Assembly (NCBI GenBank): GCA_964035545.1
Contig: OZ037768.1
Span: 11,130,741-11,194,740 of the forward strand
DNA from: Bugula neritina
Lineage: Eukaryota > Animalia > Bryozoa
Reading direction: 5' to 3'
DNA length: 64,000 nt
Both the position numbers and the translations under genes were made by a program. Shown one piece after another: positions 1 through 16,100 of the stretch (position 1 is the first letter of the stretch; every line of letters begins with the position of its first letter). The notes under the pieces were generated by a model, which searched no databases, was not told where the DNA came from, and worked only from the letters and a program-made list of their open reading frames with translations.

Positions 1-1
1 T

Positions 2-967
2 ATCCTTGCTTTAGCAGCTGTTGATTTGTCTGTATGCAGCATATCAATGCCAATTTGGCTGTTCACAACTTTCACTGAAGATCACGGCTCAGAGCTGCTG
101 TGCAAAGCTGACAAATTTATAAACTTTTTCTCAATTCCGATGTCAGCCGGCATTCTTCTAACCATAGCAATTGACAGATTCTTATTAGTATTCTTTGTGA
201 AAGTGAAAATCATAACAAGATATAAGGCTAAGTTGATAATATTCTTTCTAGCGCTAGGGTGCATTGCTATTGCTATTCCACAGACTCTCTCCTTTACCAC
301 GTTGTACAAACTTGATGAAGAGCTGGTAGCAGCCATATGCCAGGGCACTATAACATGCAACACACTGAAATGTCAGCACACCAGCGAGTACGTGTCCCGG
401 GATGTCTGGTTTTACATGTGGAGAAGTCTGATTATAGCCTTCCTCGTCATGTCGGTTATCTTCACGAGTGTTTACACGTCAATATTTGCCAAAGTCTATA
501 GAATTCACCGTAAAATGAGTCGCTACACAAACTCCGTCCACGAAAAGAGACGGGAGATACCGATGCAGACGGATCATGTGACATTCTCGAGCTCAGAACC
601 TTCCTCCGATAGCAAATCGATATCCAACCGAAACTCCGTCTTAGGAACCAACAACAATCGTCCTAAGAAACAAAACCTGCCTCATTTGCAGACTGCTCGC
701 ATACTGTTCTTGGTGACATTCTGCTTCATTGTAGCCTATGCTCCACTTGTTTTGATGATGTTTCTGGGAAGTTGTGAGAGCAAAGAAGAAGAAGATCTTG
801 AAACTCCGTGTCGCAGAAATGACTACCGAAGATTTCTGTGGCATTTTTATTTTCTGCACCACATAGTAAATCCAATAATTTATTCATTTATGAACCCAAG
901 ATTCAGAGATGCTCTGCGTAAGTGCATGAGTTCCAATGTCTGCTGTAAAGATGGCGGAGGCAGTTGA
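2..967 (+). CDS. Class A (rhodopsin-like) GPCR, peptide-receptor-like, paralog 1; 5'-truncated by the window edge
   Basis: Frame is open from position 2 (ILALAAVDLSVCSISMP = TM2). Shows the TM3 Cys, IAIDRF, TM6 FIVAYAP, TM7 NPIIYSFMNPRFR and helix 8. First stop is TGA 965-967; a probable readthrough extension runs to TGA 1046-1048 (see findings). Confidence 0.93.
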   Translation: MLALAAVDLSVCSISMPIWLFTTFTEDHGSELLCKADKFINFFSIPMSAGILLTIAIDRFLLVFFVKVKIITRYKAKLIIFFLALGCIAIAIPQTLSFTTLYKLDEELVAAICQGTITCNTLKCQHTSEYVSRDVWFYMWRSLIIAFLVMSVIFTSVYTSIFAKVYRIHRKMSRYTNSVHEKRREIPMQTDHVTFSSSEPSSDSKSISNRNSVLGTNNNRPKKQNLPHLQTARILFLVTFCFIVAYAPLVLMMFLGSCESKEEEDLETPCRRNDYRRFLWHFYFLHHIVNPIIYSFMNPRFRDALRKCMSSNVCCKDGGGS

Positions 968-1122
968 CAGATGGCGGGTACTGGAGAGAACCACAGTGGC
1001 AGCAAGACAACATCAACATCCATGCAGATTACCAACACCCCGGTGTGAAGTATTTCATTATAAACTATATACATGCCAATACGTCATGCCCATGTACTTA
1101 TTGTGTTCTTTCCAGTACCTGC
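965..1122 (+). promoter_or_regulatory. Putative stop-codon readthrough signal of GPCR paralog 1 (UGA-CAG plus 3' stem 974-991/1105-1122)
   Basis: GCGGGTACTGGAGAGAAC (974-991) pairs contiguously with GTTCTTTCCAGTACCTGC (1105-1122): 16 Watson-Crick and 2 G-U pairs. The in-frame extension is QMAGTGENHSGSKTTSTSMQITNTPV*. Confidence 0.75.
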
Positions 1123-2059
1123 ATATGTTTCTTTATCTTTTCTTTTTATTTAACAACTTAACACATTAAACAAAATTGACGAGAATGTTGCAATACACAT
1201 CGAAGTAATTATGCATTTCTATTAGAATAAACCAGAGTTAGGCTTATATTAAGTTACATTAGTACAAGTGCTTGGTGCTATAATCCTATTGTAATCACGT
1301 TTAGGTTATATTAGCTTATTTGAAGTAGAATATGTAATATGTAATGTTATATATTATCCATTATATATATTATATATATAGCAATAAGAACTGTTTAGTG
1401 TTCAGTTTTTATTTCACACATCAATATTTCAATATAATTGTCATAAACTTATTTATTATTATGAGCAGAAACTGTAGTGGGAAAATAAAACTTTATTTAA
1501 CAACTCGGAATCTAATTTTGATTTTCTAACATCTTTTGTTGTAAAAACATGCTAATACATATATTTGCAGAATTTTGCTATTAGTCATTCTAACTCATAT
1601 ATATAATATAATTGACTTAATAAGTTTTATAACGGCTAAATTAAAACCTCTTCTGTAAGAGTTTAGATCAGTGCTAAAAAATTTGGTAGAAAGTTTCTAC
1701 TTTATGCTAAAAGTCTGTTTCTGCCTGAAGTAGGGCTTGGTGTCTCTCACCCTACATGTCTAAATCAGATATGTGATGACATGTTTACAGGCTAGTTTAA
1801 AGGAGTTGGTGATAATAATAATGTTATACACTCTTACAGTAAACATGAATAAACTAAAAAATGCATTTTCAACCTTTTTAACTGAAAATCTGTTCAAAAT
1901 TTATACAAACTTGGCAAAATGCAGCTAGCAGAAACAACATAATAACATTATAAATGTGGTTAGCATGCATATAAATCATGATAAATATTACGGTTTGTTT
2001 AAATGATATTAATAATATTATTATTTATTAATAGATTAACATGCATTAATAATTTTACT

Positions 2060-2206
2060 AAAAAGTAATGTTATATATATATGGACAAAACCGTTCAACT
2101 TTTACATATGCAATCCTATACTTGATAAATAATTGCCCCCACCGGGATTCAAACCGCAGACCTCCGGCTTGCAAGCAGGAGCGCTAACCAATCACACCAC
2201 AGGGGC
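2060..2206 (-). mobile_element. tRNA-derived SINE or tRNA pseudogene (Ala-like head)
   Basis: Minus strand 2206-2134 reads GCCCCTGTGGTGTGATTGGTTAGCGCTCCTGCTTGCAAGCCGGAGGTCTGCGGTTTGAATCCCGGTGGGGGCA. It has an A-box and a B-box variant (GGTTTGAATCC) but imperfect stems and a 6-nt anticodon loop. The 3' boundary is approximate. Confidence 0.6.
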
Positions 2207-4963
2207 CACTGGGTAAACTAAACAAGCTGCACTAGTTAATTCATAGTTAGACAGGAGCTGGTGATTGCATGCGTTGTATTTGAAATACATTGATGGCATG
2301 GATATAATCACTAGTTAATAAAACACAAATTAAAAGATGCATTACCTGAATATTTCTGATGAGTTATTCACATAGCTGGGGAGACAATTCTAAAACTTGC
2401 CAACATTTTCAGAGTTTAAACAAAACTAATATCTCAAGTTTTGTATTTTATGAAATTAATATTTAAATATCTGCAATAGCCAAAGTAGATGTCAGATAAA
2501 GTAGTTTATTTTGTGTGTAAATAAGGTAGGCTTACTAACTTTTCGGAGATATGAACAAAAAAGATACCATTGACTACTAGGAGTTGCTTCCTTCTGAATG
2601 TTACGCCCTTCATTTATATCAACATTAGGGGAACTTTAAGTGAATGAAACCCAATTTCTAACACATGCGGCAAATTCAAAGAGTAGATATATTACCTCTG
2701 TAAGCAACCAGCAGCTGAAAAAAAGTGCAGTCAGACTGCATAACTTTGAGAAGTTGTAGTTGTTTTCTCATTTATCCTAATGAATCCTAGTGAATGATAA
2801 GTAAGTTAACTTATATGGTTTGTACGTGAGAATTAAAGCCCCAAAACACTTGTTTTTATATAAAAAAAGACTCAAAACTTTAAATCCTATTTACCTTTTA
2901 AAGCGAAAAAAGAATGTGAATAGATATCTTAAATGCAAAAACACAAAAATAATTTCTAACTTTGGTAACTAATAAATATGCACACATGTGCAAACCAAAA
3001 CTATTTTTTAGTTCGCCCTCATAAAAACTTATATAGACAACAATGGGGTGAGGCTTTATGCCACCAACACGCAAGTTTTTAAAAATATAAGTCAAACAGC
3101 AAATTAAATGATTATCATTGTTTACAATGACTAGTTGTAATTTAAAACATTCACCAAAAGTATAATTTAATTAAATCGCTTGAAAAGCCTTATGCTATGA
3201 TACTATAAGCTGTATAGAAAACTATGAGAAACAACCTTTCACTAGTACTATTCAAGATACCTGTTTGCTAGATTCTACATGAGTAGAGAATAAGCACATA
3301 AACAAATGAATACCTATAATACTAGGTATGCACTAAAATAGATAATACCCTAAGAATATAAACAATGCTCAGTTATTTATAGACATATTAAGATAATCTT
3401 TAGTAATTTGTGGTTATAACATCTGACTTGACTCTTTTGTGAAGCTGGGTACGGTAGGAGATGGAATGGCAGTTTCCTTTGACAGAGAAACTTGTATAAC
3501 AGAAGAAACCTGTATAACAGAATCTTCATTTTATGCAATATATTTTACAGCTTACATAAAAACTGGTTTCTTCAAAAAGCAATAGCAATGCTATTTTGAA
3601 CAAAGTTTTTCATTGGTGAAGAGTATGCTAAGATTTGTATTGGCATGTAAAAGAAGTTAATAGATTCTCATATTAATTAGCACCTTAAAGGGATCATATT
3701 ATAACAAGCCAATCTGCTATTATCACTATGATGTGTCATAGTTTTCAAGTCAGAAAGCTGGTGAGTTATGGAGAGGCAACTTCTAATTATAGTTCAATTA
3801 TACAAAATGTTACTGCTAATATCACTGTAAGCAGCATCTTATGTTGCTGATTCATATGGAGATAAAATCTATAACAGTCCTTTATCATGTGTGCTGCCTT
3901 TTCTTTCTTCTTCCTTTTGTTAAAACCTATAAATATATAATTACTATAAACCTCAAACATTCTTGCAAACTCTAGTAGTAGTTTGTTGTAGTTGAAGATC
4001 AACTCTTTAGATAAACTGGCTGAACAATCGGAGCAATCAGAATAAAGTAAATGGTGCAATAAGAAATCTCAGTACAACTATTCATATGTGTATAATAAAC
4101 TTGGGTACAATCTGGGTACAAATATTATAGGGCTACCATAGACTGTCTATGATTTTTAAGAAAAATCTTCTTAAGGCTACGAATTATTCATAGATAAAAT
4201 GTGTTGCTTAATTTAGCTAACTTGTTTATTTATATATGACATTTTTCTGTCATGTCATGACAGGATAAAAATTATTTCCAGTATATATCACTTGCATATT
4301 TTTCTCACATAAATTTGTCTAGGGTCAATTACCTATTAAGTAGCAACCCTTTTAAAGTACAGCTGGGTTCTGAAACTTGGACTGCCTCCAAGTTAAGATT
4401 GCTATCTTTCATAGAGATAAAAGCTAGCCTAACTTTTGTTGTAGACGCGAAGATTAAATCTTGCCATTTAGATTTTCAGCTATGCATATTTTATCTGATA
4501 TGCTGTATATCAAACAAGACTGACAATTCAAAAGAAAACTAGGATATATTTATAGCAAATGAGCGCCTTTAAACAGATCTCATGTGCACAACTGCATGTA
4601 TTCTTTTAACAATCTGAACAAAAAATAAGTGATAAATTACTCTAAGCATGTGAGACCAAAAAGCACTAAACAAAAAATATAACATCATAAATAAAACTGG
4701 CTACTTGCTTCAAAAACAGAGAGTTTTTTGTAAATTTTGTCACCCCAAAAGATTCCACTTGAACATTATAAGCAGCCTAGTCTATGTCATTATGCAAATT
4801 TTATTACCGTTTAAATGTTGCATAATGTAAATGCTTTGATATGGATAATATAATTGTATTATTTGCTTTCACAATAAACTCAGTAAAGGGTATTATTTTC
4901 AACAAGTATTTCCATAACTGTTACTAGCTATTATATTAGTTTTAGGTTTTGTGCCAGTTTTGA

Positions 4964-5139
<176 letters not shown>

Positions 5140-7049
5140 GTAAAGAAAATAATGTTTTTGTAGCATAAGAATTTTTCGACAATTTGGACTGTATAATAAA
5201 AATTCAAAGAAGCAGGGTTGCTGTATAATATTTGTAGATTTTATTTAATGAGTACCTTCTTGACACTCTCATTAAACATATTGATTTCATAGACAAAACA
5301 AAGTACAGATTGCAGCAACACAACTCAATCATTAAATAATTCACAGACAAGCATGTCATGTGGCACTATAACATGCTTGATAAAGTTCTCAACACATGTG
5401 CTTTTATTCAACACCTTATGTTGGTTATATAAACAGAAATGGCTGTTACATAACATTTAATATATTGCCATAAGCGTTACATATAGCAGCTTATTACTTA
5501 AAATGTTCTAGTTTTAAGCAACCACAAATACTCACAAATATCATATCAGACTTGAAGTTTTTTATTGATTTATATAAAATATGGATTAAATACGAGATTA
5601 AAAATTTGTCCATGCACAAATATTTATAAAGACTACACGGGTATTTAATGCTTAGTCTATGAACTAGCTCATACCGATTCTTTATAGTCCAATCAACAGA
5701 TTAGGACTTTGAGATCAAGAAGTGGCTGTATTAACCATCAGTAGAAGCTAAACATGCTTTTTTAAAACTAGCAGACTTTTTCAAGGTGACTAATTAATAT
5801 TACCATGCTTTCTGATCTTCTGATTTATTATAATTTGATTGTTTGATAAATTATAACAGAAATACAAATATAATTGAAGAGAACTTTTTCTGCTTATAAT
5901 AGAATGATAAATTGCACATATTAAAGAATTTGTAATGTTATGATGTTATTTGAGCCTACTTTTTAGTGTTTCCACAATACTGGGTTGTTTGAAGTGGGAG
6001 TTGTCTACTATATTGAGAAAAAAGCCTGTTGAGAATTCTGATCTCTTTAGCTCCTGATAGTGACCATAGATGTATGAGAATCATTCAGTGCTTATTATGC
6101 ATATGCTAAAAAACAGTTCTTTATCGATATTTTATTTATATATTCATTATAAATATGGTAACTGGTATCTTACATATGACAGTGTATTATCAGTCATTTA
6201 GCTCCAGCTGGTCAGATTTACTGGCCTTATGAAGTGCCACACATAAACACATTTTAACTCAAATAACTTGTTTGAGTCTAAACAACCCAGTGGAATTTAA
6301 AATAGTCTTAAGATGAGTAAAACTGGTAAATACATTTTTTTAAAGCTGTTTTCTAGCATTAACCTCTGAGAGAGAAATAGTAAATCGCATATAAGCCAAT
6401 TAGGTCTAGCTTCAAATGAACACCTTTATAAGTTAATGTAACGGACATAATCTGCTACAAACACAAACCGATACCACAGGCTCCAACTTTGCTGCTGATA
6501 TTATTGAAGGTCAGTTCTAAATTGTTAATGACCACAGTCTATATTTAATAGGTACTACAAAAAATAGAATAAAATGGGCAGATTGCATATTGATGAAAGA
6601 GTATAGGCTATTAATCAACAAACTGACATTGTCTACCAGGTTAAAATTAAGGCATATGCAAAAAAAGCTGTTCAGCAGGTCATACACAATGTGTTATAAA
6701 TAAAACATGGTGTTGGGTAAAAGCAGCTTAAAGCACACATATACTTTGCTTTTGAAATTCCAGAAAAGGTCAACTTTGGAGCTTTACTAATTTATATACA
6801 CTTAGTTGAAATTCCTATCATACCCAAGCTGACATACTATGAGATATGGGGAATATATCTTGATATATAAACTATGGTGGTTGGCTCCACATGCATGCAT
6901 TATTAGTAAGTGCAGCACGTGTAACTACATGTAACTAATAAGAAAACATTGTGATATTCATTTGTAGATTGGAGCTGTAACCAATAAGTTGGTGAGAGTC
7001 ACATGCAGCAAGATAGAAATGTGATTGTTGCTATTTGCTTCTTCCAAAG

Positions 7050-10000
7050 GTAAGAAAAGGCACTTTTATGATTATTAGTATTTTAGTACTTAATATTTAG
7101 TTAAATTTGTAATAGGCATTAATTTTGTAGCTACAGATCTAGTTAATAGTAATAGTGTTTTTATAACAACAAAATAATTTACATATTTTATTAAATGTTT
7201 ACCTGGTTGAGCTACAGGTTCATGGTCTTGGTTTTTATTTAAATGCTAAATTAAAATAATCAGTCATTACGACGGATAAATACTTTTATAAAAAAACATT
7301 AATAAATAATTGTATTAAATTGGCTTTGGTGATTATTTACAGTCTGACTTGCAGCCCAAATTGGAATTTATTATGCCTTGTTTAAAGGTTGATAATTGTT
7401 GCTTAAAATATCTATATTATAGCTCGATGCAAAAAACATGTCCATTAGTAAAATGATATTTTCGAATTCTTTACTATAATTTTGCCAAGTAATTGTTCTA
7501 CTGCTTTACCACCTACACAGTAATACTTTATTGAATTTAATAGATATTTTTTACTGTTGAGAGAGAGTCATGCAATTAGAATTTGGGAACTTGGACAATT
7601 TAGTTACTAAAAACTGTAACACTGATTCAATCACATGCATAATATTGTGTGGGTGTGTTTATGATTTTACCACACATTACTAAAGGTTTAATTAAAATGC
7701 AAATACAATATTTTTTAATGGTAGGTTTGTAACATTAACAAAAACAATGTGTTTCTAAGGGCAGTCGTACTGACTAATTGTACATAGTTTTGGCATCTAA
7801 ACTTTTTTGTTTGGCTCGAGTGTGAACCATCTAATTTATAAGATGTATGCTGGAAAGACTTCCATTAGCTGAATTAAGATTTGTCTACTGGCAAAACTTT
7901 GTCAATGTATGTAAGTGTGCAGCATAATATCCCCTAGCTTATGTAAGGTATTTTATTTAATTAATTAAATAATATAAATATAACTAAGTAGGCAAATACA
8001 TGACAGTATTCGAGTGGGAACATATTTCCAGTCATGCTTGTGCATATCATGTAGGAATCATGCCAGCTATTAGTGTTGCAAAAATATAGTATTGCTGCTA
8101 AATTCATATAAATCTGTAACAGGGGTAATATCGGGTTTGGAATGTTAGCTGCTATGTGAAGGCTTGATCTGGATATTCATGACGCTTATTTTTATGATAC
8201 TTGCATGCCTGCAATAAATGTGACTGGATTTTACTGATGCTAGTAATGCAATAGTGTAAATACTAGGGCCGTGCTATTTACTGTGCAACAATAATACTGG
8301 GTGAATATCTTTCAACCCTCACGCATTAGCAGCTTTTCTCTATCGCAACTCCAAGCTCAGTTTGACTAAATTTATAGTTCCATAATAAATAGGCACAGTA
8401 TGGAAGTCAACTACTCCATAATATCACTATAATATCCAGAATTTTTGAAATGTTGAATACGTTTTTTAGTTTACTGCACACCTCACTGATTTAGGTTTAG
8501 CTAAAACAGCATGCCACTATAATAGAGTTATTTATAACTGCAGTTGAGTACCAACTTATAAAAAATACTTAGCTGTATGCCAAACAAATATTCTTTAACC
8601 TACTTAAAGACTACCTTATAGAAAATTTGCCCAAAAACAACTGCAAGATCATCAGTTGAACAATTCCTTAAATGATGCAATTGACATTCGAATATGAACA
8701 CAACTAGCACGGGTTTTAATATGCTAACCAAAAGCTATACTATATTGTAATGTAATTTTTAAAGTTCAAACCGCTGTTCCTTGAAAATACACCATTGAAT
8801 TTATTAAATATATTTTATTATAAAATAGCAGTCATAAACTGACATTAGCATAGCATATTTCAAAAGTTTTTAAAATCTTTTTAGAAAACAGCCAGTTAAT
8901 CTAGCAACTGTCGAACTAAAAATAGTTAGTCTGGTTAAAAAGGAATTAAAACTGACTGTCCTAGCATAGATTTACTAATTTGATTGACTGTTGTGTACAG
9001 CAGTTACAGCTACAGTGACGGTATTTGTAGCATTTAGCTCAATAGTTCTTGCAGCTCAACACGGTTACAACTTGTATACACCTGTGCCTTTTTGTTGAAC
9101 AAAATTGTTAAAATCATTAGTAAGATTAAAATGTTCCCCAACAATAGCTGTTGAAAGTTTAGGAATTAAAACCAACACTTCTATTATTGCTATATAAAAC
9201 CTGAGTATAATATTTTCGAATTGCTTAGTCATAGTCTCTAAAAAATATATTTGTCTAATGCAACAGTGTTACCGCTATATTCCAAAATTGATATAATAAT
9301 ACAAATACTATTAAAGTATTTTGATTGAGCATTATGTTGAAATTTAATGTAATTTATTAGCATGGCATGGCCATAGAAGGAATTATTATTGATGTGTTAG
9401 TATAATGGTAAAAACAGCAATTTATTGGCAACTATATATAACTCTCTGGACTTAGAACCTAGAAATGTGCCAACAATTTTCCTGGCCTGGGTATAATATT
9501 TAATGCCTGAGTCAACTCTTCGAAAGTAATACAACCTGGATAAATGCTTTGTATGCATTCCTGGCTATTATTTGGATTGGTCATTACGTAGGTTCCCATG
9601 CTGACATGCAATATTATTATCTGACTCAAAAATTTTTTATGGGTTATTGGCTTTTTTTCACATATGTTTAGTTTAATATCTACAGCCAAATAGCCAGATG
9701 TCCGTTCTGCCACTAGCTCATACTTTGGAGGGGGGGGGGGGGAGAGTGCACTAGATGCCCAGTATACTTATAGCGCTGCAATTAAACTAGCCACTTGTTT
9801 CGAGTGAGTGAATGCTATCTTTGATGTGTACCAGTCATATAAGGACTATATTAAAGGTTCAAAACAGAACCTATGACTTTAGTGCTAAAAACTAGTTGGA
9901 CAATGTTGATGGCTTTGAACTTGCAACCCTACAGTTAGGATCTCAAATGCCTCTCTTAACATCAAATTTGATGCCAGGAGAGCAGAGCTGATGTGCTTTC

Positions 10001-10692
10001 CTAAACTTGATATGATTAGTGACTCTTTATTTTGATTTTCATAAGATTGATTGATAAAAACAAGATAGCATTTTGATTTGTAAGAACATGTAGCTCTAGG
10101 AATAATTGCTGTCAAATACAAACTGCAGTATAATGCTTCCCCAAGTAATTAAAGAACCCACAAGATGCATTTTCATATTTAATTACCAGATAATGAGATA
10201 GCTAAACTAATATAGCAAATGTCACCAATATCTATATTATGCTGTTATAGGCTAACATACATCTGCAACAGAATGCAGTACTCCCTATGTATATGCAGCA
10301 ATTTTTGAATAGATATGATTAAAATTACAAAAATATGTACATCTATGTCCCTACTGCTGAATTAATTGATTTGTAAGCATTTAAGACAGTCACAGAGGAC
10401 TTCTTTGCGTATCAATATTAAAGTTCAATGCAACTGTTAGCTAAAAGAGTCCCTGAACTAAGCTGCTCTGTATATAATTATATTCTTGGAATTATTACCA
10501 AATTGAACAAATAAAATTGTACTATCCAGAGTCAATAAGTAAGACAGGGAGTTTGTGGGTTTATTCTGTAAACTAAAATGTCACACCCTTGTACTATTAA
10601 TCTATAAAAATATAGCTACCTATCATTAAAAAGAAATTTCGTTGTCATATTTTATTAATTATCTTATCAGTAATTTATATTTCTCCTTGTAG
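7050..10692 (+). other. Possible 5'-UTR intron of GPCR paralog 2
   Basis: Donor-like AAG|GTAAGA at 7050 and a pyrimidine-rich acceptor TTTCTCCTTGTAG ending at 10692, 68 nt before the ATG. Pairing of these two sites is an inference. Confidence 0.35.
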
Positions 10693-10760
10693 AAATCAAG
10701 AGAATAAGACAGCTGACTGAATAATTTTGGAATTTTTGACACTCAGCTGCTTCATGAGAA

Positions 10761-12068
10761 ATGGAATCAAACTTGACCAACACCGTAAACTATACCTCCT
10801 CGTACAGTGCGCCGATGCTACCTGTTTGCACAGAAAATATTCAGAAAATTATTTGCGACTTCATCTATACTGGTGTACAGAAACCCGTAGACATAAAAGA
10901 TTACAAACAGTCAGTGTGGATATGGGCATCTTTTGGATTCTTTACGCCGTTATGTTTATTTGGAATTATTGGCAACATAATAACAATTATTATGTTTTCC
11001 AAATACATAAAGAAGACAACTACTTCGGTTTTTATTGTTGCTCTAGCCTTTGTTGACTTGCTAGTGTGCAGCATCTCTATGCCAATCCAGTTGTTTGTTA
11101 CTCTCAATGGGTTCCACCAGTTTGACCCTATTTGTCGAATAGAGAAATTTGTCACCTTTCTAGCATGTCCGCTTTCAGCAGGAATCTTGGCTGTAATAGC
11201 AATAGATCGATTTCTACTCATATTTGTTGCTCGTACTGACATAGTGACTAAATTCAGAGCAAAGATTATAATTGCTGTAGTAACATGCATATGCTTGGGA
11301 CTAGCAATTTTTTACACGCTCGCTCATACCACTTTGAGACACATATCTAAAAAAGACCTTGAAAAAGTTTGTGATGGAGAATTTTTTTGCAACATAAAAA
11401 GATGTGATGCCACTAGCTTTCTCTTCGAAAAGCCCCATGAAGTGGCGTTTGACTTGCTGGAAGTTACGCAATACACATTCATTGCAATAGTTGTCATCTT
11501 TATTGTGCTCTACACGTTGATTTTTGTGAGAGTTTATCGAATTCACAAGAAAATGACTTTGTGGAAGTCTACCAGGCATGTTACAAAATCAAGTCAGAAA
11601 GTCTATGAAGATTCGAACACATTCACAACGGAATATCCAGCCACAAATGGAAATGCTACAGAAAATGGTAAAATCGGAGCAAACACTCTAGAAGGAACAA
11701 GCCAGGACAACCACGAAAGAGAAGTTGGTGCAGCTGAAGAGGCTAAACTGATGAACACACCCAAAGAGCCACCAAAGATTAAGAAAGAAAAGATCAAAAA
11801 GAGACGACCACCTCATCTGCAAACAGCCCTCACTCTCTTTCTGGTAACTCTCACGTTCATCATTGCCTATGCTCCAATGATTCTGATCACAATGCTAAGA
11901 GTTTGTGAGGATAACACGATGTGCCCGGATAATGGCTACAAAAAGTTCTTCTACTACTTTTACTTTCTCAACCACGTAACAAACCCTATAATTTACTCAT
12001 TCATGAATCCCAGGTTTAAGGACGCTGTCAAGGTATTCTTCAACAAGTTCTCGTGCGCCAGTAGCTGA
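10761..12068 (+). CDS. Class A (rhodopsin-like) GPCR, peptide-receptor-like, paralog 2 (435 aa)
   Basis: N-terminal NLT/NYT sequons, TM1 GIIGN, TM2 LAFVDLLV, IAIDRF, long ICL3, TM6 FIIAYAP and NPIIYSFMNPRFK; clearly paralogous to 2-967. First stop is TGA 12066-12068; a probable readthrough extension runs to TAA 12141-12143. Confidence 0.95.
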   Translation: MESNLTNTVNYTSSYSAPMLPVCTENIQKIICDFIYTGVQKPVDIKDYKQSVWIWASFGFFTPLCLFGIIGNIITIIMFSKYIKKTTTSVFIVALAFVDLLVCSISMPIQLFVTLNGFHQFDPICRIEKFVTFLACPLSAGILAVIAIDRFLLIFVARTDIVTKFRAKIIIAVVTCICLGLAIFYTLAHTTLRHISKKDLEKVCDGEFFCNIKRCDATSFLFEKPHEVAFDLLEVTQYTFIAIVVIFIVLYTLIFVRVYRIHKKMTLWKSTRHVTKSSQKVYEDSNTFTTEYPATNGNATENGKIGANTLEGTSQDNHEREVGAAEEAKLMNTPKEPPKIKKEKIKKRRPPHLQTALTLFLVTLTFIIAYAPMILITMLRVCEDNTMCPDNGYKKFFYYFYFLNHVTNPIIYSFMNPRFKDAVKVFFNKFSCASS

Positions 12069-12204
12069 CGTGAGGCAGGGACAGCATCTGGAGGTTATAC
12101 TACTACAATTACATCAGTGCAAATAGTGAGCACTCAGCTGTAAATATGCTATCATTACCCAGTAAATTGATACCAGTAGTTGCCTAGATGTTGTACCCTG
12201 TCTT
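12066..12204 (+). promoter_or_regulatory. Putative stop-codon readthrough signal of GPCR paralog 2 (UGA-CGU plus 3' stem 12072-12091/12184-12204)
   Basis: GAGGCAGGGACAGCATCTGG pairs with CTAGATGTTGTACCCTGTCTT: 20 bp including 4 G-U pairs, with one bulged A at 12195. The in-frame extension is REAGTASGGYTTTITSVQIVSTQL*. Confidence 0.75.
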
Positions 12205-13149
12205 CTTGCTCCTTTTTTTCTATTTTCTTCATGTTTTACTTTGTTCTTTTAATGTTTATTGGTTTAGGACATTTCTCAGCATTTAAACCTACATGTATGT
12301 ACATCTAACAGTTTTCTAAACATATTTTCCATAAATATATAAACTTATTGCTAATATATTAAGACAAAGGTGTGGAGGTTAATAATAACAGCTTTATACT
12401 CAACCACAATTATATATATAATATATTGCTCCTTGCTACGTTGTGCTAATAATGGGATTTGATTAGCTCTGATTATTTTTATGTATTCCTAGATTATGTT
12501 ATGTTACAACATTGTCATTTATGTTATAATATAATTATTTTTATAATTTTTGCTTCTGAACAAAACAATAAATTGGGAAACTAATTATCATTTGAAGTAT
12601 CACTAAAAAAATCAATTTCACATAAAACTGTTACATGAAATGACTCAATAGTGAATATACTGCAGCAGGCCAAGATATGCAGCGCCATGTTATGTACATA
12701 CCAGCAATTGATAAAATGAAATTAGAATAGAGAGAAAACCTTATTTGCATTTTAATTTTTCTAAGAAGTTTAAAATTTGACATTTTATAATTTTCAGACA
12801 CAATATTATAAATACTGATAGAGAAATAGTAACAGGCATTTCATATAAAAATATAACACCGAATTATGAAAATAATGACTGGAGTCTGTATAATTTAGAC
12901 AGGGTAGTTAAAAGTGAGCAAGAAAATGTCTTTAATAAAGAAGATACAAGACAAAATTTTATCAACAGCCTAAATAATAGCTTTGTCATTGAATGGTCTC
13001 ACCCATGAATTATCGTAATGCACAAATGCAATCAAAATCAAATGATCAAATTAAACTTTAGATAAATAATATCAACACTGTCTTATGGGAGCTGTATTAT
13101 ATCGCCCCCTACTCAACTACCATTGCGTGTATAGAAACTGTGCTGTGGA

Positions 13150-16100
13150 TTATTGTATGACGCACGAGGCAGCTTTAGTCAACTCAGTGTTGAATTCCTC
13201 ATCTAAACCAGAGTCGTCCCTCTTACGTCCTTTAATATCCGGCATTAGCCTATCATAATGGAGATCTTGGCGCTCGTAAAAAAGAATGTAACAATTCCTT
13301 TGATTGGTGTGCGTTATTGATGCTTCAGGCAGCTCCTACAAATATCACAGCAACAAGATTAAAGTACAATGGAAGAGTGTATACTGAGCCAGCTACTGCT
13401 AGGTGTAGAGACCATGTATAGTTTTGCTAAGTTTGCATTTTATAAATTTTGCCTTGACTTTTTGAGCAATGGACAACTTCACTGGCTGCAAAGACTTGCA
13501 ACTATACATCTTTACAACAGAGCGCATAATGGGACAACTTAGAGAGAGGGGGGGGGGGGAGAGGGGACAACTGATTAAAACTAGGAGATGGTAAATCTGT
13601 TTGAATCCCCAAGAGATTTATTAACACAAAGTTTGTAGACTTAAAACTCTGAGAAAACAACACATAAATTACTGAAAAAACTACAAATACAAACTACAAA
13701 TACAGAGTACAACTGTGAATACAGTGCACAGTTGTGAATACAGTGCACAGTTGTGAATACAGTGTACAGTTGTAAATACAGTGTACAGTTGTGAATACAG
13801 TGTACAGTTGTAAATACAGTGTACAGTGCACAGTTGTGAATACAGAGCACAGTTGTGAATAGAGTATGACTTTGCCTTGTTCACGAAGTTGTCATACACA
13901 GGAGTATGTAAAGCCTAAACTGATGCAGTGTGTTGCAGTTAGTTGAAAGTAGATGGAGAAGATAGGGAAGTGAGTCATAGGATATGATAAGTGTTGAGAT
14001 TGTTATCTGCAGAGTAAAATGGCTGCTGTAGCAGCAGAAACAACAATCAGTGTTTACAGATTCTACTGCAGGGTGAACTATGAGTTACATTGTATCCCAG
14101 TTTAACTATATTACAAACAGCACAAGCATACACAGCACAATCCAATCCAGAGCTCCACTTTACTAAAATTAGAACGTAGTGTAGTGAATAGGAAAATAAA
14201 GAAAGTGATCGAATAGAAGGCAGCGATTTGCTGACCTGTTTTGCTTGTTACTGGCCAATAAAATTCGAATAATCATTTGAATCAACTGTTTACTGACACT
14301 TGTAAAATGATATTTTCAAGAAAGCAAAACACATTTTGTTACGAAATAAATATTTACATTTAATAAACATAGAAACAAGCTACACTGTTTATAGCAGCAG
14401 CTGGAATTATGTTTTAGTTGTTTATTAACCCCACTTGGCGGAGTAGTAAACCATAGCTTAGAACGTAAACAACCAATGTTCATTTCTGAAAACAATCCAC
14501 GATTTTTATTGAGCCAAACAAAAGTTAAAATATTCACTGATCGATTAAAAAACAAAAATAAATTGTTTTAAAGTAACTGTCAAATACCCGTAAACTTGGC
14601 ATTTTAGTATAAGTTGTAAACATGGCTATAAATTACAGTTAGCAGAAGGTAAATTTTAGAAAACTTTTTAAACAGTTGAGAACTGTAGCACTAGCGTAGC
14701 TATCAGTTTTTAATCAATTGTTTCCATCAGTGAGATAAACACTTTATATACAGCTCTGTGAGATAGTCATGCTCTAGTGGTAACGAACTTTATACTAGAC
14801 ACTAGGTCGCTCATGTCAAATACATTAAACTGTATTCAAAATTTTTGAAACTTTGTGCCAGAAAATATACCTTGAGTAAAAAATCTACAAGAAATTTAAC
14901 ATAATCACTGTTTTAAAATTTAAACTTGAAATTCGCACAGCCAAAGCCAATTGCTAGAAAACTTCAGTGTTTCACAAAAAATGACCAAGACATCAATGGG
15001 ATCTAGGGATCAATTAAAAATTACAATACATTGTCTTAATTTAAACAGAATAGAAATGTGGACAAAAAGAAATAAAAATCTTTTTACCTCAAATTTCAAG
15101 TTGCGTATTAGCTAAGCCAGAAGTTTCATTATGCTAAAAATTGATAATTTCGAATAAAGATGGCTGCCAAGCTAAAGTGAGAGCGTGATGAAAGATGATG
15201 ATAACCAGTAGTTCGGAGCAGGCTGGGGAAGAGATAAAAAGAAAGTCAAATAGATATAATGAGGGCTAAAATATTAGTATATAAGAAGGACTCTGTACTA
15301 TGACTGCAAGTTATATGTGGGTATTTGAGTAATATTATACAATACATACCTTAACCATACTGTCGTTATATTCATACCATTTACCATTAGGATTCTTAGT
15401 GTATGCCACATAGTGACCCCCTCCCAGGTTCCCCCTGTGGCACTGCAAAGGTGAAAGTAGGATATTAGTCAAATCAAGGCACAGCAAGCTTTAGCCAAGT
15501 ATTTGGCAGCATCAATGCTATTACATATAGATACATATAGTGTGTGTGTGTGTGCGCGCGCGTTTTGTGTGTGGTGTGTGTGTGTGTGTGTGTGTGTCTT
15601 TTGTGTGTGTTTGTGTGTGAAAGAGATGGAGTTTTTTGAAAAAAAAACTGGCCAAGTTAAAGAAAAGGAATAAGTGGGAGAGTTAACTCATAATGTGTAA
15701 ATATTTGTGGAGTTTCCTCTACCAACAGTTAACTAAACATGCCAGCTATAAGTATGAGGAAACTCACAACTATGTTGACAAGTTAGTTATCAAATAAATT
15801 GTTAGTGAACTACCCTAATTATTGGAAGAAAGCATGTCACTTTATCTTAGAAATAGAACAATGGAGAACAAGTAGTAGCAGGTTATTGTGTTGAAAACAC
15901 CCTGTGTCTTGTGACATTAGTGTGACCTCACCTGTTGCCAGACTTCATCTATTTACTTAAAACTAGAAATGCTAAGACAACTCCCAAAAGTCACTCAAGA
16001 AATACTGAACTTTAGCATACAGTATTGAATAAATTATGATTGGCTTTGAATATTGGAAACAGAACTTTCCCAGATCCTAAAGTCAACCTGAAGGCTTTGA

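Follow-up and report, generated by a model that had tools for sequence, protein, structure and literature searches.

Viruses account for most of the well-defined RNA structures known to promote the readthrough of stop codons; in cellular genes, solid comparative support for such a structure is rare. Among the cellular examples are hdc and kelch of Drosophila, both of which have conserved extensions and stem-loops after a leaky stop codon. In viruses, extended 3' stem-loops acting as readthrough stimulators are found in alphaviruses, in tobra-, peclu-, furo- and pomoviruses and in coltiviruses (Firth et al. 2011, PMC3159437). In their common element the UGA has C as its next nucleotide (as CGG or CUA; one furovirus has UGA-UGG), and a 7-12-nt spacer separates it from a stem of 10-12 or more bp, which shows compensatory substitutions and closes a poorly conserved loop of about 100-150 nt (PMC3159437). 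In reporter assays the extended stem-loop of alphaviruses raised readthrough 3- to 14-fold (PMC3159437). Murine leukaemia virus gag-pol carries an RNA structure 8 nt after the stop codon, which is believed to work where the mRNA enters the ribosome (PMC3159437). Moreover, the vertebrate genes OPRK1 and OPRL1 undergo readthrough at UGA-CUAG, for which the 12 nt after the stop codon are enough, without the help of a structure further downstream (Loughran et al. 2014, PMC4132726).

Full-text literature searches for readthrough in Bugula and in bryozoans at large retrieved no paper on the subject. In this study, we describe a long-range stem behind the stop codon of two G protein-coupled receptor (GPCR) genes of Bugula neritina and compare it with its counterparts in related genes. 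From this analysis the stem is probably a new cellular case of a known type of recoding signal. It concerns a whole animal GPCR family with an invariant UGA, a hidden conserved tail, a long-range stem and many independent compensatory changes. The family offers a natural series of diverged arm pairs, well suited for testing what a helix at the mRNA entrance does to termination. It further points to two forms of the receptor, set apart by a tail that probably controls phosphorylation and the binding of scaffolds. Annotation pipelines cut such proteins at the first stop codon.

Two tandem receptor genes and the stem behind their stop codons

The window analysed here is a stretch of 64,000 nt of B. 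neritina DNA (assembly GCA_964035545.1, contig OZ037768.1, positions 11,130,741 to 11,194,740 of the forward strand). Two tandem intronless genes for rhodopsin-type GPCRs (Pfam 7tm_1), paralog 1 and paralog 2, lie in surroundings which according to the window composition are AT-rich animal DNA. Paralog 1 terminates at a TGA at 965-967. By protein search, these two genes are the only members of their family in this genome. A protein search of public sequences gave 15 family members with 37-95% protein identity, all of them apparently bryozoan. Among public sequences, the nearest relatives belong to the B. neritina draft GCA_010799875 (PMC7576161) and to Watersipora subatra; paralog 2 has a 95% identical ortholog, P0001, in B. 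neritina runs. The family DNA set consists of 11 loci, the two paralogs plus nine fetched loci; the DNA-level comparison leaves out P0002, P0006, P0013, P0009, P0012 and P0014. The features of the two genes, all on the + strand, are as follows.

10761 to 12065, +: paralog 2 ORF with TGA at 12066-12068; 435 aa, intronless, rhodopsin-type 7TM receptor (ORF list, translation, Pfam 7tm_1 E = 1.3e-29)
12066 to 12069, +: stop context UGA-C, preceded by the Ser codon AGC (sequence)
12069 to 12140, +: in-frame extension of paralog 2; 24 codons, Ser/Thr-rich, ending in S-T-Q-L (peptide comparison across lineages)
12072 to 12091, +: 5' arm of the stem; its conserved core, 12077-12091, corresponds to +9 to +23 after the stop codon and encodes A-G-T-A-S-G
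12092 to 12183, +: loop of 92 nt, made up of the remainder of the extension, the second stop codon and 40 nt of 3' UTR; its internal folds are weakly conserved
12141 to 12143, +: second stop codon, UAA, inside the loop of the stem (sequence)
12184 to 12204, +: 3' arm of the stem, in the 3' UTR; bulged A at 12195, conserved block TGTTGTACCC at 12189-12198
965 to 1122, +: paralog 1 cassette, with TGA-C at 965-968, a 26-codon extension at 968-1045, TGA at 1046-1048 and arms 974-991 x 1105-1122; matched by covariance model R1 (see below) at 972-1124

Several other elements were seen in the surrounding sequence. Between the two GPCR genes, a borderline Rfam tRNA match (29.4 bits, gathering score 29) is located at 2134-2206 on the minus strand, and also at L002:3912-3984; it has no ARAGORN call and may be a tRNA-derived repeat or pseudogene. 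A sub-threshold cluster of Rfam matches on both strands at 4918-5148 (mir-297, mir-3149, mir-1277, IRES_L-myc, sno_ZL1) resembles a tract of simple repeats or one rich in hairpins. The contigs that carry the paralog 2 ortholog also contain an ORF of 97 aa some 650 nt further downstream (L007:2102-2395), for which no Pfam hit is recorded. Null sampling elsewhere in the window met a few very strong local inverted repeats, with duplex energies to -56.7 and -60 kcal/mol.

The first-pass annotation had described the paralog 2 stem as a 20-bp helix with four G-U pairs, one bulged A and a 92-nt loop, and this description holds in all its parts. As read from the sequence, 12072-12091 and 12184-12204 pair in antiparallel orientation; the G-U pairs occupy stem positions 1, 4, 13 and 19, and 12195 is the single bulge. 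RNAfold returns exactly this helix in the minimum free energy (MFE) structure as well as in the centroid (-45.5 kcal/mol, z = -3.0, 3 of 200 shuffles as good). The helix of paralog 1 (974-991 x 1105-1122) comprises 18 bp with two G-U pairs and is matched by none of 200 shuffles (z = -4.4). The core conserved in the family is 15 bp long; paralog 2 alone has the 5 further pairs at the bottom of its 20-bp helix. Since the paralog 2 helix reaches down to +4, these bottom pairs must be open during decoding of the UGA. In a check against chance, duplexes were computed between a 36-nt segment and the 275 nt that follow it; the value for paralog 2, -37.9 kcal/mol, was reached at 4 of 2935 random window positions (a tail of 0.14%) and by 16 of 1102 GC-matched 36-mers.

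Compensatory changes between the two paralogs had been proposed as well. Their 5' arms indeed differ at 9 of 17 positions (+9, 12, 15, 17, 19, 20, 21, 22 and 23), and all 17 positions are paired in both genes. The exchanges given as examples are correct, namely U-A to A-U at +15, G-C to C-G at +17 and A-U to C-G at +20. Of the 17 aligned pairs, six are identical, four differ in one base and seven in both. Cognate arms have duplex energies of -34.4 and -31.9 kcal/mol, as compared to -13.5 and -15.6 kcal/mol when the arms are swapped between paralogs 1 and 2. The two 3' arms share the GTACC..TG core that had been reported for them. As to the U-rich tract said to follow the 3' arm, the Bugula copies have it (57-70% U) and the other lineages do not (27-50% U).

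With two paralogs only, however, any two stable hairpins look compensatory. The picture might then come about without structural selection, from two chance hairpins in AT-rich 3' regions or from inverted-repeat remnants inherited by both paralogs, and the window does contain strong inverted repeats at other places (down to -56.7 kcal/mol). Judged from the alignments, covariation between the two paralogs alone is not separable from two independently stable hairpins, and it is the orthologs that separate them.

Covariation of the stem across the family

The stem is found in the same register in 10 of the 11 loci, where +9 to +23 pairs with a UGUUGUACCC-like block of the 3' UTR located 82-269 nt downstream. 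Because the 5' arm is coding, it can be aligned from the stop codon without gaps; the 3' side was anchored on the conserved GUAYCC. In the 10 sequences, 141 of 150 cells of the core are paired (94%), as compared to 20-60% at the flanking positions. After collapsing to eight independent lineages, 93% of the cells are paired in this register versus 43-58% when it is slid by 1-6 nt. Double-sided changes are present in 11 of the 15 core pairs, and none of 5000 column shuffles reaches the observed pairing percentage, double-sided count or covariation score (scripted ungapped register alignment of the eight lineages). RNAalifold, applied to an alignment without paralog 1, gives this stem as the only consensus structure.

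The covariance model R1 was built from four sequences (paralog 2, L013, L016 and L017), and paralog 1, L018 and L011 were held out. It recovers held-out sequences at exactly the predicted ends: L018 with E ~1e-5, the B. neritina ortholog of paralog 1 with E ~0.003 and the paralog 1 of the window with a borderline E ~0.07. L012 and L020, which have loops of about 265 nt, are missed by R1. In a scan of the genome, paralog 2 alone was found, a lower bound given that 150 of 24,303 candidates were scored. On the R1-fitted alignment, the share of paired cells (92.9%) and the covariation score (0.381) are each reached by one of 500 shuffles, but the double-sided count of 4 of 13 pairs is not significant (135 of 500 shuffles). 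This count understates the covariation between paralogs 1 and 2, because the divergent upper 3' arm of paralog 2 is gapped out and the bulge is ignored; most of the compensation between the two paralogs lies in the upper arm and bulge region which the R1 alignment drops.

Selection on the structure, on top of the coding constraint on the 5' arm, had been suggested from the two copies. The larger set supports this suggestion, and does so more strongly, through the eight lineages, the double-sided pairs, the shuffles, RNAalifold and R1. Third-codon-position conservation is 0.51 in the 5' arm versus 0.43 in TM7 and is not clearly elevated. Chance hairpins are hard to reconcile with a register that is kept in eight lineages at about 40% protein identity while most pairs change on both sides, with the agreement between RNAalifold and the detection of held-out sequences by R1, or with the low pairing of slid registers. 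Because of these comparative data, we regard an origin without structural selection as excluded for practical purposes.

Within the core, all 18 wobble pairs have G on the 5' and U on the 3' side, and the sense duplex is more stable than the antisense duplex in 7 of 10 sequences. The wobble orientation and the stability of the sense duplex indicate that the folded strand is the sense RNA and that the stem is not a DNA palindrome. In the protein tree, the stem-bearing genes are spread over five clades, with paralog 1 in one group with L017 and Watersipora and paralog 2 alone on a long branch. The cassette is therefore older than the radiation of the family, and its compensatory changes have arisen many times. 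About five double changes fall in the paralog 2 lineage, where they accompany the replacement of the peptide T-E-x by A-S-G. In L018 the stem is weaker and interrupted. In L020 (1669-1976) the 5' region pairs with the conserved 3' block in two overlapping registers, the homologous one of 10 bp and a shifted longer one which is favoured by duplexfold.

Stop codon context, hidden extension and transcripts

All 11 family ORFs terminate with UGA. The +4 nucleotide is C in nine of them, and two have UGA-UGG; the nine UGA-C loci include three with UGA-CUAG and one with UGA-CGG, as well as paralog 1 with UGA-CAG and paralog 2 with UGA-CGU. The last sense codon is a Ser codon, AGC or AGU, in 10 of 11 loci, and it is possible that the conserved AGC-UGA-C exerts a 5' context effect on readthrough. 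Behind the UGA, all 11 loci contain an in-frame extension of 19-31 codons. These extensions begin alike with A-G-[T/A]-x, are rich in Thr/Ser in the middle and mostly close with [S/T]-x-[L/V/F]; the 26-codon extension of paralog 1 ends in T-P-V. The uninterrupted tails of P0009 (W. subatra) and P0012 align with the family extensions, and the P0009 tail shares S-A-T-K-S-T-S with the extension of L017 (E = 0.004). One pairwise BLAST of two extensions was not significant (E = 66). Because it aligns with uninterrupted tails of homologs, the extension can be taken as a real and conserved part of the receptor tail that lies behind a stop codon. P0009 itself (residues 395-447) seems to be about 5-6 codons short around the position of the stop codon and the 5' arm. 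The locus L019 (2788-3700) has kept AGC-UGA-CUAG, has no detectable long-range stem, and its 19-codon extension does not close with [S/T]-x-[L/V/F]; stem and tail motif may here have been lost together on a long branch, a single instance.

A UGA that is invariant in 11 of 11 loci would also be expected if it encoded selenocysteine, with the stem as part of a SECIS or of an SRE-like insertion signal. SREs are stem-loops situated shortly after the Sec UGA. A search for SECIS and other Rfam families relevant to the stem gave no match at E <= 1 in window positions 1-14000 or in the nine related loci, and the stem is a plain Watson-Crick/G-U helix without the AUGA...GA kink-turn core, which together make selenocysteine insertion highly improbable. 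We know of no precedent for a lone Sec in a cytoplasmic receptor tail. In the uninterrupted homologs P0009 and P0012 the stop position falls in a gapped stretch of the alignment, in which no Cys is seen. A tRNA-like or other Rfam identity of the stem was also considered and was rejected, as there were no matches.

Transcript data were taken from Logan contigs of four runs, which drop minority variants. These contigs span the region without a splice joint, and the TGA at 12066-12068 is unchanged. Two contigs have a word depth of 403 in a 260-Mb run and of 80 in a 42-Mb run. The published B. neritina assembly comprises 216.0 Mb (PMC11480708), and since genomic DNA of this size could not yield such depth, the two contigs most likely derive from RNA. 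Another line of data is a contig from an oligo-dT RNA library, which covers 11817-12079. The RNA-type contigs carry the TGA, the extension and both arms unspliced. The only variant in the arms is T>C at 12089, present in the X1 and X4 contigs and in the B. neritina contig L007; it is synonymous for Ser (UCU to UCC) and opens one pair near the top of the helix. No variant of the 3' arm was found in the contigs of the four runs. The RNA-type contig X4 ends at 12522, and an AATAAA is located at 12567-12572.

Editing is a further way to pass a stop codon. If ADAR turned the A of this codon into inosine, the UGA would be read as UGG (Trp) and the extension would be made from edited mRNA, similar to the amber/W site of hepatitis delta virus. 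Here, too, a conserved duplex adjoins a stop codon whose recoding gives a short functional extension, and A-to-I recoding is widespread in some invertebrates. We nevertheless consider editing very unlikely, because the A is mostly unpaired (in five of eight predicted folds), because it follows a G, the least favoured 5' neighbour for ADAR, and because UGA is invariant. The consensus of the RNA-type contigs, from which minority variants are dropped, reads A at 12068. UAG would serve editing as well or better, yet the family keeps UGA in 11 of 11 loci and a +4 C in nine of 11. In addition, a duplex of 15-20 bp is short for ADAR.

Candidate mechanism and comparison with known recoding elements

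The anatomy of the locus makes it likely that the helix 12072-12091/12184-12204 acts as a cis-acting mRNA structure which stimulates programmed readthrough of UGA-C. We interpret it as a readthrough stimulator because its anatomy fits the element described by Firth et al. and because its conserved core begins 8 nt after the stop codon. With the UGA in the A site, the conserved helix would begin about at the ribosomal mRNA entrance. A stable helix at this place, together with the poorly recognised UGA-C, might tip the balance from release factor to near-cognate tRNA, so that a fraction of the ribosomes would insert an amino acid and melt the 5' arm. These ribosomes would add 24 codons and stop at the UAA within the loop. 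Two receptor forms would result, one with a short tail and a minor one with a Ser/Thr-rich tail ending in the PDZ-ligand-like S-T-Q-L. We infer from the conserved anatomy that readthrough takes place and that the stem raises it. With loops of up to 269 nt (L012, L020), formation of the helix is kinetically less certain. Since L019 keeps UGA-CUAG without the stem, context alone may suffice for some readthrough.

Covariation proves selection for pairing, not for a particular function. The same helix could be selected for a job other than recoding, as a long-range 3'-UTR duplex bound by a Staufen-type dsRNA-binding protein in localisation, stability or translation, any readthrough then being due to the UGA-C context alone. 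The location of the 3' arm in the 3' UTR would suit this role. It would also agree with L019, where UGA-CUAG persists and the stem does not, and with the vertebrate UGA-CUAG genes, for which 12 nt after the stop codon suffice (PMC4132726). Such a role does not, however, account for the 5' edge of the core, which is fixed at +9 in all 10 sequences although the loops vary from 82 to 269 nt. This edge matches the 7-12-nt spacing of known stimulators and would let a terminating ribosome abut the helix. Furthermore, L019 has lost the end motif of the extension together with the stem. On balance, we think a purely non-recoding role unlikely and prefer stimulation of readthrough.

If the stem does stimulate readthrough, it might do so as a regulated switch and not as a fixed stimulator, since its 3' arm belongs to the 3' UTR, past the stop codon that ends the extension. 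Readthrough would fall if alternative polyadenylation took place between the second stop codon and the 3' arm, or if the UGUUGUACCC block were masked by a protein or a small RNA. We consider regulation of this kind doubtful. If true, it would set, cell by cell, the share of receptors with the Ser/Thr-rich, PDZ-ligand-like tail, and at least five paralog clades would have retained the switch from an early ancestor within the cheilostomes.

Several known systems resemble the candidate bryozoan readthrough signal to different degrees. SECIS and SRE elements and the amber/W site of hepatitis delta virus are likewise RNA structures which redefine a stop codon and lengthen a protein, and their defining features are absent from the bryozoan stem. 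In contrast to murine leukaemia virus, which has a UAG followed by a compact pseudoknot, the bryozoan genes have a UGA and a simple helix closing a loop of 82-269 nt. From hdc and kelch of Drosophila they differ in phylum, gene and stop context.

The resemblance to OPRK1 and OPRL1 is closer. Both cases concern rhodopsin-type GPCRs with an invariant UGA and a conserved following context, UGA-CUAG being present in three bryozoan lineages, and both have an extension of roughly 30 residues which is conserved mainly near the C-terminus. As in OPRK1 and OPRL1, the trait is common to paralogs, which makes it older than the gene duplication. Unlike in the vertebrate genes, a long-range stem is conserved in the bryozoans and the context from +4 to +9 varies by lineage; the receptors are not orthologous.

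The element of Firth et al. comes closest in anatomy. The candidate bryozoan signal shares with it the UGA-C context, a spacer of 8 nt, a long stem (a core of 15 bp) with compensatory changes, a long loop (82-269 nt) and a downstream in-frame ORF encoding a conserved peptide, in bryozoans of 19-31 codons. It differs from the viral elements in belonging to an animal cellular gene family. It also differs in the position of the second arm: in the viruses both arms are coding, whereas the bryozoan 3' arm lies in the 3' UTR past the second stop codon, since the extension is only 19-31 codons long.
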